From: Bugula neritina
Taxonomy: Eukaryota > Animalia > Bryozoa
DNA: 64,000 bases
Assembly: GCA_964035545.1 (NCBI GenBank)
Contig: OZ037766.1
Span: 9,662,722 to 9,726,721 of the forward strand
Direction: 5' to 3'
Of the stretch, positions 45,883 to 59,500 are shown piece by piece. The notes beneath the pieces were generated by a model. The model had not been told where the DNA came from. It saw nothing but the letters and a program-made list of their open reading frames with translations, and ran no database searches. Every line of letters starts with the position of its first letter. Positions within the stretch are counted from its first letter, which is position 1. Position numbers and translations under genes: made by a program.

Positions 45883-53775
<7,893 letters not shown>

Positions 53776-54042
53776 ATCTTTCCAACTGTATCATAAGCAT
53801 ATTATGTAATGAAGAGTTGCCATGTTTATCGAGCTATTTTACCTTCATTTATTAAAACCCCTTCCTCATAGCATAACGTTAGATGCATATAATGTAATAA
53901 GCAGTAAGGATGTGTGTTGAGTTTTTATTCTTAATATTTTTTTATAATAAACATAATTAGTATAATATGCAACACATGGGACAGTATTAGTTATCCAATA
54001 AGCATAATTAAGACATAAAAAATTCAAATAGAAGTAAAATGG

Positions 54043-55069
54043 TTACCTCTCAGCAACTACAGCTTCATCCCATGGGCCATATAAATTGTTCTTAATGGGT
54101 TGAAGGTGAATTAAAAAATACGGACAAACAAATGTTATAAAAAGAAAAAGGACAACAATCATCATTGCCAACGTTACAGTTTGGGTAGCAACCATATACA
54201 CAGACAATAAGAACAAACTTATAGACAAGAACAGATTTGAATATGGCCGAAGGTGCAATTTTAAATATCTCCTCAAGCTGGGCAACACATCAAACAGCAA
54301 CACAGAGAGCACTATTAATGAATAGCCTTGAAATAAGTGACTAAGCCTGGAGGCAAGGCAAACTGTTGCAAAAATACCAGCATTAAATGAGACAACTCCT
54401 TCATTAGAAAAGTTTAGCTGGTATATGTAGTTATGAGATATGAGGTGTACTAGCAACATTACAGTTGCCATAGCATAAATGGTGTCCGTAGAGATTGTAT
54501 CGGTGAGTGACATGAGCACGGGAGACAGGACAAAAGAAGCAGTGCAGAATATTATAACTGCCTTCATATCAAATGCATTGGAGTCACATACTCTTCTTAC
54601 CATATAACACAAGCATAAAATTCCAATAGATATTAAATTCAACACATATGGATCTAGCAATGCTTGGTTTAAATATATAAAACACATAACGAAGATGATA
54701 ACAGAATGAATTTGCTGAGTTATGCAGCCTGTATGCATAAGTAGAGAGTAATAATCATAATCCCTAACGAATAAGTTCTTTCTCATCTCTGTTAAAAACG
54801 TAGTATCCACGTAGTTGTCTGGTACACCTTGATTTTCATACAGTATTTTTACCCAAGGTTTCTTTAGTTTAATGCTCTCTCCACTATCTTCACTAAAACA
54901 AGTTAAAAAAAAACTATGCTACATTAAACAAAACTGTATTAGAGAAATTGAAGTATTAAATCAATTGTCAAATGTTCATTAGTTGCATAAGTAAAGCATT
55001 ACTTATTAATTTACACTTTATTTCCTTCACATGGAGTACCTACCACAGTCTAGAAAACTCTCCATTCAT
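54043..55069 (-). CDS. PIGC: Phosphatidylinositol N-acetylglucosaminyltransferase subunit C (GPI2/PIG-C); exons 55069-55044 and 54892-54043, ~291 aa
   Basis: WVKILYENQGVPDNYVD, LSPVLMSLTDTISTDTIYA, SFNAGIFATVCLASRL, KNNLYGPWDEA; start exon MNGEFSRLC joins in phase via GTAGGT...TTTTAG. Confidence 0.95.
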
Positions 55070-55081
55070 GTTTAAAATGAT

Positions 55082-55650
55082 TTAGTTTTGTGTATTATTA
55101 ACAGGTGAGAATGCCTTATGTTTCTCTCCTTGTGCTTTAGCCTTTTCCTTAGCCTCTAGTTTTTTTATCAGATCCTTTCGCCGATTTCCAATAACATTAT
55201 TTCTGGCAGCAATAAAGGCAAACAGACCACTAGATACAACTATAGCCCTGCAAATAAAGCATTACTTACAGAGAACTGAACAACTCAATAAATGTATGGA
55301 TTCATCTCAAAATCACTTTTTAATACTTATGTCTTTAAATAATGTTAGTTGCACAAAAGAAACAAGAAATACTTTTACCCGGCACAGTTTGGATGCATTT
55401 TGAAAACATACAACAAATTTACGCAACTATTATAGGCACATGAAAATCATTTAGCTATTATGCAATGTACTATATGCCTAATGCTAATTTTAAAATATAA
55501 AAAACAAGTACCCATTCAATGAAGGGCACCTTGTCACTTATAATATTTGAAAGTGTTTAGCAAAATTTTGAAAATAACAGAAATCTGCTATACTAACCAT
55601 CCAATGTTCACCTTCGTCAGGGGTGACAGGCTCCGCAATTGTTTTAGCAT
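55082..55650 (-). CDS. 72-aa single-pass membrane microprotein, DUF4748-like; exons 55650-55598 and 55247-55082
   Basis: MLKQLRSLSPLTKVNIGWAIVVSSGLFAFIAARNNVIGNRRKDLIKKLEAKEKAKAQGEKHKAFSPVNNTQN*; phase-2 intron GTTAGT...TTGCAG; absent from the ORF track because it is spliced. Confidence 0.75.
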
Positions 55651-56629
55651 CTCATTGAGGGTAAAACACAACTATACCAGCCAAACACTAAATCAAAAAG
55701 TAATAACAATATAATTGATAGTAAACCATATTGCCCAAAACAATGTTTACTATAAAACTTTTAGAATACTCATATACCTGAAAGCAAAATCTTAAAAGAA
55801 CGTTGAATGATTGCATTATTGTCGATTGTAAGGAATTTGATAGATACTTTGAATGGGCACACACCAAAAAAGAACATTGGACACCTTCAAAATTACATGT
55901 AATCATATTAATTTCTACAGCTTTATGAAATTTTTTTACACTCTGTTGAATCTTTGTATCCTCTCACAAAAAGCTAACATCATATTACTTAAAAATGACT
56001 ATTGTCTTATCAAATTATAGATATATGATTTAAAATACCCTTTTAGATTTTGGAATGTCGAATGCCACCCTTACAGTTATGATGCAAATAGCCTACAGTA
56101 AGCAAAGTAAAAAAGTTGCATATATCATACAGTATACAGCCTTAAAGACATGGGATGAAGCTATAAAACTGGTGCTGGAGGATAGCTATTACTTATGTTC
56201 ATAGTATCAGATAATGTGGGTATGATAATTAATACTATAACAGTAAAAATTATGGAATATGGCGATAATTGTCAACTGCCAGTGTGAGTAGCATGATAGA
56301 CTCTTGAACCGCACAACTACAAAGTTTACAAATTCTGAAGGCCAGTTAAAACTTCAAAGTGAAAATCAAATACCGAAATTACAAACAGATAGAAATGCAA
56401 AACTAAAGCAAAGCTCAAAGAAAAAGTTTCGTAACTTATTAAATGTACTGAAATTGTAAATTATTTAAAATTAAACTAATGGTTACTGTGTTTCCAAATA
56501 TGAAATAACACTTAGGTTTAAACACTCAACAGCAATTGTAAGGCTAACAGACACAATGACACTTAACGCCAACAGTAACGTTATGTCAGTAACTTTACTC
56601 GCCTAATTAGTTTATTGATTTTAAATGTA

Positions 56630-59500
56630 TGTAATACTAATAATTGATGAAGTACTAACTAGAAGAGTAAGTATAATTACTACTATAGTGATAGTCTATA
56701 ACTAATAAGTGATAACGAATAATGTAAAACTACAAGTAGTAGTACATCTCAACAACTACAAGATGAACAGCAACTCTAAGAGTAGGTACTTGTAGTTGTA
56801 ATCGTAGCATGTGCAAAGCCAAATGCCAATGAATATCGCAAATATAAACTTAAAGTAAAGGTCGGAGATAAGAAAAATGTTATAAATATAATAATTATTA
56901 TTTATAATCATTATCATTATGATAATGATTATCATATTCATATTGAATATTCTACCAGAGTAAAAGTACGGTCATACTTATACTTTATAGTTATAGTTAG
57001 TGAGCTAAAGTAGCTTACATTTTTATTTTGATGCTTAGTAATAGTTTCAGCTTGAGTTACAGCTACATGAACCGCTTGAAAGCAACTAAATCTGAGTTAA
57101 GTAAGTGAGTTTGACTTTGAGTAAAAAAGTCACATTCAGTTTCACTGCTGAAGTCAAACTCAAACTAAAAAACTTGTAGACTAGTACTAGTACTAGTACT
57201 AGTAGTAGTAGTAGTACTAGTAGTAGTAGTACTAAAAGCAAATGCTACTACTACTACTAGTACTACTACTACTAGTTTTACTAAACTTGTTAATTTAAAC
57301 CAAGTTAAAGTTACAAACTACTCATGCTCAAACTTAGTTATTGGTACCGGCTCTGACAATTCACCCCCTGTAACATTCAAAATGAATAAAATTATGTAAT
57401 AATATTATATAAGTACAATTTGTTAAATGAAAACGACTAACTTCAATTCTACAGCACATTTAGATTTTAATATTTTGGATCATGATATTTACTGTGTGTA
57501 CACTATTTTCAGACTATTTTCATAGCCCAAAATCATGGAATGAATAAGGGTCTGTTTGCAAAATAGTTGTTACATTGCAACTATTATTAAGAAGATAACT
57601 CTATATGTCAGCGTTCTACTGAAATAGTTATCTTTCCACGTCAGTCATATTACCCAAGTTGTTAATATGAACACTTAATATCAATAATGGTTCACAGGCT
57701 AACTTTCAAAGATGGATGGCTGCATCACGTTGAGATATTATTTGCGATCACTCACACTGTCACTGTAATAGTAATAACTGATAAGCCATATACATGAAAT
57801 TTGATAACCTGGCTGCAAATTTAGAAAAAAACAATGCGTAGTAATTCATGCGATAGATTAAATTCTCTCAGATTGCTCTGCGTTTACTCTTTACATAATC
57901 AGTGATAATGATTATGATAATCATATCACTCAATCTCATAACTTATTCACTGTTACTGTTACACTTACACTTACTGTAACTGTTAGTGTTAGTGTTACAG
58001 TGTTAGACTTAGTGTTACAGACTAAGTTACACTGTTACTGTTAGTGTTACACTTACACTTAGTCTTACACTTACAGTTAGTCTAACTCAAAGTAACTGTA
58101 AGACTAAGTGTTACACTTACAGTTACTGTTACTGTTAGACTTAGTGTTACTGCAAAGTCAGGAAGTGTAAACTTATGCAAAATCAAAATGTAGGAACTAG
58201 GATCAGGATGGCCTGATGGGTGATGGCTCATATTTATTATTTATAATCATAGTAATAGTGATTTTGGTAGTGATACTCTAATAGTATGCTCATACTGGTA
58301 AGTGATACTGATAGTGATAGTCAAATTCAATGTCATAGTGATAGTCACTATCAGTATCATAATGATAATGATACTCATACTGTCATACTCATAGTCATAG
58401 TAGTAGTACTTAGTAGTCATAGTTATACTGATACTCGTAGTCATTGACTGGTCCAATGAGTTACACTTCGAATTACACTTACTCTTAGTCTTACAGTCAG
58501 TGTGAGTGTCACAGTTGTACTTAGTCATTGACACTCACACCGAGTCCAAGTTACTGTTATGCTTAGAGTTGGTGTCACTGTCAATGTGACTGCATGTGAA
58601 ACTGAGTGTGAGTGAAAGGAATAATTATAATATGAATAACTGATGATTGATGATCATGATAAATTCATTTAGATCATTTGATGAATGCTACTAATAAGTA
58701 ATAATGCTACTCTAATTCACAGTCATACCGTTAGCTACTGACTGAGAATCTGATTGACAGACTTAGTCATACTCATAGTGACTACTCGGATTAAAATTAA
58801 AGATAAATCTGTTTAGTATAATTTTAAGTATAAATTAAACTATAGCTAAAAGTAATAACAATAGTAATAGTATAAGTATAAGTACAATAATATTAATAAG
58901 ATTAATACTCAATATTAATAGTAATAATAATACTAATACTGTAATAGTGTAATAGTTATAGTAGTACCAACTCTAAGGCAATGCAATACTCAGTAGCCGA
59001 TAAGCAATAAATATAATTAATTAATTATAATAATAATAATTCTAATAGTAATACTAATAGTAATTAATGCTACCAATTATACTTATTGTGATAGTATTAC
59101 TATTACTATTATGGTGGTAGTAATACTAATAGTAATAGTAATGCTAATAGTAATACTAATACTTATAGAGTTATGGTGATAGAGTAGTACTAATAGTTAT
59201 AGTAAATGTAACAGTAATAGTTATAGATCCATTAATACTAATAGTAATATTAAGCCTAATTGCTAATGGAGTAATAGTGAAACTGAATCAAAGTTTTGTA
59301 CTGGGTCTTGTAGTTCTAGTAAAAGTTAGTAACTGTAATCCTAATATATATAGAATTAGAGTTACTTTTAGAGATTTTACTGATATTAATACTCATTGTT
59401 ATGAAATGGGTCAAGTGCGGTCGGCAGTATAAATACAATACTAGTAGTGTAGTAGTGTAGTGAAAGTCACAATACTTAGGCGTTAACTATGTCTTATACC
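56630..59500. repeat. Degenerate ACT/AGT/GTTAC/AAT microsatellite tracts in the divergent PIGC-DCAF1 interval
   Basis: TAGTACTAGTAG runs at 57180-57280, TGTTAC/ACACTT runs at 57940-58150, ATAGTC/ATACTC at 58250-58560, TAATAG at 58850-59280. Confidence 0.85.
57600..58220. promoter_or_regulatory. Presumed bidirectional promoter core for the microprotein/PIGC unit and DCAF1
   Basis: Head-to-head gene arrangement; AAGATGG (YY1-like, ~57709), CACGTCA (CRE-half-like, ~57637), CAGGAAGT (ETS-like, ~58159). Confidence 0.35.

Follow-up and report, generated by a model that had tools for sequence, protein, structure and literature searches.

In the bryozoan Bugula neritina, the gene for the GPI-anchor protein PIGC most probably belongs to a conserved dicistronic gene, one spliced mRNA of which carries first a putative single-pass DUF4748 microprotein of 65-72 amino acids and then the only PIGC of the genome, the latter reached, as we infer, by reinitiation. 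The locus lies on the minus strand of the window, by which we mean the whole 64,000-nucleotide stretch of DNA analysed here. We regard the layout as beyond chance because both predicted introns are removed in RNA from four studies and because five other lineages share the layout. An essential single-copy GPI-anchor gene would thereby have been kept as a second reading frame across a deep clade, and the features that we find notable are this depth of conservation, the very short and variable spacing between the first stop and the second start, and a recurring uORF that overlaps the first AUG.

Reading and translation of the window found all the features claimed for the PIGC locus in its minus-strand sequence (Table 1). 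The sequence-only reading had started from the observation that the large PIGC exon cannot begin on its own, and this is correct: the exon has no in-frame ATG ahead of its W-x-K-x-L-Y / PDNYVD motif, an in-frame TAG stands in intron B nine codons upstream of the acceptor, and ATG 55069 with its GTAGGT donor is where it was said to be, as is the spacer free of AG that separates this ATG from the TAA of the microprotein. Joined across intron B, the PIGC ORF comprises 291 amino acids. Its large exon gives a full-length match to Pfam GPI2 (PF06432; profile positions 1-270 of 270, E 8.7e-72) and is the only GPI2 match in the genome, so that PIGC is single-copy; identity to named PIGC proteins of molluscs, annelids and a brachiopod is 43-46%. 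The microprotein, also single-copy in the Bugula neritina genome, is translated from the window as 72 amino acids that form a single hydrophobic helix followed by a Lys/Glu-rich tail.

Table 1. Layout of the microprotein-PIGC locus in the window, and the passage from first to second reading frame in the related lineages.
Feature	Position	Strand	Details
5' untranslated part, first genomic exon	55651..55687	-	acceptor AG 55689-55688 (tttag/TG)
Mini-uORF	55644..55655	-	ATG AGA TGC TAA; three codons, overlaps microprotein AUG out of frame
Microprotein coding exon 1	55598..55650	-	ATG 55650; 53 nt = 17 codons + TG of a split Trp codon
Intron A	55248..55597	-	GT..AG, 350 nt; donor GTTAGT 55597, acceptor AG 55249-55248
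Microprotein coding part of shared exon	55082..55247	-	ends with stop TAA 55084-55082
Intercistronic spacer	55070..55081	-	ATCATTTTAAAC; 12 nt, without AG
PIGC start part	55044..55069	-	ATG 55069 + 23 nt (MNGEFSRL + TG); phase-2 donor GTAGGT at 55043
Intron B	54893..55043	-	GT..AG, 151 nt; acceptor 54894-54893
Large PIGC exon	54043..54892	-	282 codons + stop; phase matches the 55044..55069 part
PIGC 3' untranslated region	53692..54042	-	contigs extend to 53692
Lineage L007			spacer 22 nt; PIGC start MNGEFSRM + CA, then GTTAGT
Lineage L004			spacer 1 nt (TAA-A-ATG); PIGC start 26 nt, then GTATGT
Lineage L005			spacer 5 nt; PIGC start 20 nt, then GTATTA
Lineage L014-L017			stop/start overlap TAATG (-1); PIGC start 14 nt, then GTATGT
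Lineage L008-L010			spacer 37 nt; PIGC ATG without an intron after it

The RNA evidence consists of Logan contigs from four runs, each from a different study, which we aligned to positions 53400-57000 of the window and from which they are about 5% diverged. In three of the four runs a single contig joins 55662-55598, 55247-55044 and 54892-53692, and the fourth run follows the same path with a break at the first junction. Both are of the GT..AG type on the minus strand, and the joints fall exactly where they had been predicted: the joint 55246/55597 (cut +1), which removes intron A, and the joint 54892/55044, which removes intron B, are each present in contigs of all four runs. The RNA contig L006 (1186 nt) illustrates the outcome, with a 65-aa microprotein ORF at 28-225 and a 291-aa PIGC ORF at 238-1113, 12 nt apart, the second of which starts at the same ATG as window ATG 55069; another RNA contig, L013, likewise runs from the end of the first ORF into PIGC. 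The public assembly GCA_010799875.2 (contig L012) contains a called PIGC gene of 291 aa whose coding sequence is identical to that of L006, and the fetched gene table, which annotates PIGC, has no gene over the microprotein region, so that the public annotation holds the second protein of the pair and misses the first. A spliced RNA carrying both complete ORFs thus exists. Whether it is the exclusive form goes beyond what contigs can tell, as assembly loses rare variants and gives no transcript ends, and a minor monocistronic or processed PIGC form could escape it; no monocistronic PIGC contig or joint was seen in the four runs, in contigs of a kind that drop rare forms. The proposal that the microprotein ends and PIGC begins within the one exon 55247-55044 is borne out by these spliced contigs and by the layout in six lineages, and a search for signs to the contrary found no other upstream coding exon, no contig over intron B and no second copy of PIGC.

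The same contigs bear on a different arrangement, in which two overlapping but separate transcription units occupy the locus, microprotein mRNAs end near 55018, PIGC is driven by a promoter of its own in intron A or the shared exon, and the dicistronic RNA is minor read-through. Intron B does contain an AATAAA (near 55018, at 26 nt from the PIGC donor), and because starts and ends are invisible in contigs such units could in part go unseen; we see no use of this signal in the contigs, however, and no contig of the four runs enters intron B, the depth in both bins that include the intron being accounted for by their exon parts alone. What is assembled is the fully spliced dicistronic form. A low-depth contig of run X1 that spans the boundary between intron A and exon 2 counts in favour of separate units, but it is equally well explained by unspliced precursor or by DNA in what is a 'metagenomic RNA' library. 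Moreover, the PIGC AUG follows the microprotein stop at -1 to 37 nt in six lineages, a distance too short for a promoter that lies outside coding sequence. We consider separate units improbable, and retain the reading of a single dicistronic mRNA.

The window and the RNA do not come from identical genomes. A comparison of window 53400-56200 with L001, L006 and L012 puts the divergence of the window genome from the public assembly, and from all RNA runs labelled as the same organism, at about 5% for exons and 9% for introns, the introns also carrying large indels; a single name would seem to cover sibling species, or else haplotypes that are very divergent. In the diverged strain the spacer ATCATTTTAAAC is identical, and the reading frames of the window and of the RNA strain differ in length only at the microprotein tail, by an indel of 21 nt that preserves the frame. 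The microprotein has accumulated 11 synonymous and 7 non-synonymous changes between the two (dN/dS 0.17), and dN/dS for PIGC over the same comparison is 0.13; judging from these ratios, both proteins are under purifying selection.

At their 5' ends the RNA contigs extend beyond 55662 by up to 50 letters, of which the first 27 are identical to the strain-matched assembly L012 as far as the tttag/TG acceptor; upstream of that point (55688/55687) the RNA reads AAAAG where the window and L012 (2120-2140) both read GATTTAG, a mismatch from which it follows that a non-coding leader is spliced on at 55687. The contigs of the four runs break off about 25 letters or fewer into this leader; k-mer assembly stops where many transcripts share sequence. 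No AAAAG/GT donor occurs on the gene strand in the 8.3 kb of the window or the 2.1 kb of L012 upstream of the acceptor, and a genome-wide pattern count for a leader donor gave no clear enrichment. The leader could be a spliced leader or it could be a distant non-coding first exon, and both fit the contigs. With either origin, it precedes the first cistron and does not separate the microprotein from PIGC.

A leader that is absent from the adjoining genomic sequence, in contigs that stop so soon after entering it, is what might be expected if the locus were an operon whose transcripts are separated by trans-splicing of a spliced leader. In that case the dicistronic RNA would be the precursor from which a monocistronic PIGC mRNA arises, by the joining of a leader to an AG within the end of the microprotein ORF; in all lineages, AG dinucleotides do occur at 10-50 nt ahead of the PIGC AUG. 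But an acceptor at such a place would destroy the upstream ORF, and the spacer itself is free of AG in Bugula neritina, L004 and L014. The shared exon of the window has neither AATAAA nor ATTAAA, and in lacking both an acceptor AG in the spacer and a poly(A) signal the locus differs from spliced-leader operons of the nematode or tunicate type. Among the loose contig ends listed, none has a leader joined near the PIGC AUG, and the assembled species has had both of its introns removed, unlike a short-lived operon precursor. We give this explanation little chance. A separate observation made in the same genome is a tandem array of 33-bp period (G000:C2:458502-459269), each unit of which contains AAAAGGTAAGT; as far as seen, it is unrelated to the PIGC locus.

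The dicistronic layout extends well past Bugula neritina. A protein search with the large exon returned one near-identical protein (96%) and fourteen unnamed proteins at 49-62% identity, the best named matches from other phyla being at 46% or less. A PIGC tree groups these fifteen with 100/100 support, on a long stem and separately from every named phylum. The clade is very probably bryozoan, a placement drawn from the PIGC tree and from record names beginning with BRYA, as the related contigs are unlabelled and we infer their taxa. In genomic contigs of five further lineages, the PIGC proteins of which show 49-61% identity, the microprotein lies immediately upstream of PIGC, on the same strand and in a shared exon, and the layout is found in both main branches of the clade, so that homologues of both ORFs are at hand from six lineages. 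The exon 1 peptide of the microprotein is conserved in L001, L004 and L010, and its exon 1 was not found in L005 within 2.9 kb. The intron after the PIGC ATG is in phase 2 wherever it is present. At the one outgroup locus searched, PIGC of Lingula with 10 kb to either side, tblastn and exon HMMs found no homologue of the microprotein.

From the first stop to the PIGC ATG the distance is -1, 1, 5, 12, 22 or 37 nt, depending on the lineage. These values also speak to a third possibility, namely that PIGC is made as a fusion with the microprotein by readthrough of the stop codon. In the window TAA, 12 nt and ATG do lie in frame with no further stop between them, but each of the other spacings (-1, 1, 5, 22 and 37 nt) shifts the frame; the in-frame relation is not conserved, and readthrough seems to us extremely unlikely. 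Two local variants of the junction were observed in passing. In L004 (1470-1538) an internal, out-of-frame ATG of the microprotein is open into the PIGC frame and would add about 22 residues to the PIGC N terminus, and in L007 (106-135) a mini-ORF of 4 codons in the 22-nt spacer ends with a TGA that overlaps the ATG of PIGC (ATGA), a second case of stop/start overlap.

If the two proteins are made from one mature mRNA, the question becomes how ribosomes arrive at the second. The mode of translation that we favour is scanning-dependent reinitiation: in every lineage the PIGC AUG lies near the stop, which it overlaps in one case as TAATG, and an overlapping uORF is present in all three lineages in which exon 1 is visible (Bugula neritina, L004 and L010), and it is for these two reasons that we prefer it. 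We propose that a single promoter gives rise to a single spliced mRNA, with the DUF4748 microprotein first and PIGC second, and that PIGC could be reached along two routes. On the first, ribosomes that have ended translation at the microprotein stop would begin again at the PIGC AUG, -1 to 37 nt from it. Reinitiation after an ORF of 65-72 codons is usually inefficient. On the second, the mini-uORF would be translated, the microprotein AUG would be passed, and ribosomes would restart about 200 nt downstream. The overlapping uORFs have 3-9 codons and a weak context (T at -3), and they end 7-11 nt after the A of the microprotein AUG; ribosomes that use one cannot start the microprotein and must therefore restart downstream. 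Shuffling the 40 nt upstream gives a chance of 0.13-0.24 per lineage that such a uORF would be there anyway, and we take the recurrence in all three lineages to be suggestive only. The pairing of both frames on one mRNA would give a low, coupled output of PIGC.

Leaky scanning may contribute to the translation of PIGC as well. A purine stands at -3 of the microprotein AUG in all lineages, and simple leaky scanning should therefore pass only a minority of ribosomes. Between the region of the microprotein AUG and the PIGC AUG there are one or two further AUGs per lineage, most of which open 9-codon ORFs that close ahead of the PIGC AUG. These AUGs are scarce by comparison with mononucleotide shuffles (P 0.006), but 6 were observed against 7.4 in shuffles of codon order (P 0.32), so that codon content accounts for the scarcity and we rejected AUG depletion as independent evidence. 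As for a viral-type TURBS mechanism, the closeness or overlap of stop and start that forms part of its definition is present at all the spacings given above; TURBS motif 1, the UGGGA complementary to 18S rRNA, is absent, the shared exons of all lineages being free of TGGGA.

What, then, is the microprotein? A Pfam scan with the exon 2 peptide alone gave no useful match. For the full-length natural protein P0121 the top match is DUF4748 (PF15932) at 24.4 bits (E 2.4e-5), below the gathering cut-off of 27 bits, and the only other family listed at E up to 10 is DHDPS, with a weak match; DUF4748 is also the family of the two ESM Atlas clusters closest to P0121. Among 1.8 billion representative proteins, a profile of the exon-2 peptides of the bryozoans (A1) matched mostly exon-sized calls from related contigs together with two full-length proteins, P0129 and P0130 (E 6e-4), which exceed the DUF4748 cut-off at 35.3 and 41.5 bits. 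The microprotein resembles the family in its short N-terminal segment, its one transmembrane helix with a G-x-x-x-F-x-x-A-R core and its basic helical tail, and differs in that the window protein, at 24.4 bits, stays below the 27-bit cut-off; we file it as a putative divergent DUF4748 protein with its own score under that threshold. We also weighed the small subunits of the GPI-GlcNAc transferase (PIGY/Eri1, PIGP, DPM2) as candidates and rejected them, as there was no match to those families with Pfam E up to 10.

The sequence-only reading had gone on to suggest that the microprotein might be linked to GPI-anchor synthesis, and for this we find no support: it appears to be a DUF4748 protein, and its relatives elsewhere do not sit beside PIGC. 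In the contigs that carry P0130, for instance, different ORFs lie downstream. Nor does a shared mRNA show that the microprotein and PIGC work together. Word-based protein searches, cluster look-up, the literature and the PDB yielded no named DUF4748 relatives. We take human CEBPZOS to be a member of the family. The proteome of the mitochondrial intermembrane space includes CEBPZOS (PMC5404111). A mitochondrial location of the microprotein, reached by analogy through that presumed membership, is only a lead. In two JGI contigs from an unknown eukaryote, L020 (96-2140) and L021 (73-2117), three ORFs lie in a row on one strand, a 74-aa DUF4748 ORF, a 369-aa ORF with a faint PPTA match and a 125-aa ORF of the Ocnus family, separated by gaps of about 150 and 185 nt; judged by its sequence, this looks like a three-ORF transcript with DUF4748 in first place.

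To our knowledge, functional two-protein mRNAs are rare in animals, most cases coming from vertebrates and flies. The nearest parallel is human PYURF-PIGY, which is listed among the characterised human bicistronic transcripts (PMC13303939). There too a small protein lies upstream and a subunit of the GPI-GlcNAc transferase downstream on one mature mRNA, but the bryozoan locus has PIGC rather than PIGY and DUF4748 rather than PreY, with stop and start -1 to 37 nt apart, and the two pairings must have arisen independently. In other animal transcripts, MIURF-MIEF1, ASDURF-ASNSD1 and SLC35A4/STREMI, the conserved main ORF of the reference transcript is preceded by one of about 70-100 codons that is likewise conserved and encodes a small protein (PMC13303939). 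They share with the bryozoan gene the order of a conserved small-protein ORF before a conserved main one, and differ in being vertebrate and in their longer intercistronic distances; unlike in those pairs, the exon that holds the first stop of the bryozoan locus also holds, just behind it, the start of the second ORF, which an intron then splits.

Two further systems bear on the proposed mode of translation. In caliciviruses, and at the UAAUG of influenza B segment 7, termination is coupled to reinitiation at overlapping stop and start signals. The bryozoan junctions resemble these in the closeness of stop and start, the TAATG of L014 being an exact overlap, and differ from them in having no UGGGA, in spacers of up to 37 nt and in lying on a cellular mRNA. 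The second route that we propose is closer to GCN4 and ATF4, the latter cited as a case of delayed reinitiation after a short uORF (PMC13303939): a uORF of 3-9 codons in weak context ends just past the AUG of the first cistron, the differences being that the ORF skipped here is a conserved protein-coding gene and not an inhibitory uORF, and that the bryozoan mRNA is not known to respond to stress. A search of the literature for PIGC on a bicistronic mRNA, and for operons or spliced leaders in bryozoans, found no paper on either. We see the locus as an additional, well-supported case in the known class of animal two-protein mRNAs, and the spacing series, from TAATG overlap to 37 nt, together with the recurring uORF offers a natural comparative test of how a downstream cistron is accessed. 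It is tempting to speculate further that bryozoans regularly use two-gene mRNAs with a spliced-on 5' leader, the downstream gene of which is reinitiated by way of tiny uORFs laid over the first AUG, and that DUF4748-PIGC is one ancient example. A subunit of the GPI-GlcNAc transferase would then have been coupled a second time, independently, to a small membrane protein that is possibly mitochondrial, which would hint at a functional reason, but we hold so general a habit to be doubtful.

Some smaller observations concern the surroundings of PIGC. The 3' end of a plus-strand ankyrin-repeat gene overlaps the PIGC 3' untranslated region tail-to-tail, and a plus-strand GT..AG intron at 53558-53691 (joint 53557/53692, within 53466-53692) belongs to this convergent gene; ankyrin ORFs also lie on the strand opposite to PIGC in L012 and L013, and unstranded assembly merges the PIGC and ankyrin-repeat transcripts into a single contig. 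In mites, the PIGC models P0058, P0062 and P0106 are 379-441 aa long, and one of them is named cytochrome c oxidase subunit Va. Mite PIGC may be fused to, or closely paired with, a gene for a small mitochondrial protein, or these models may have been merged in error.
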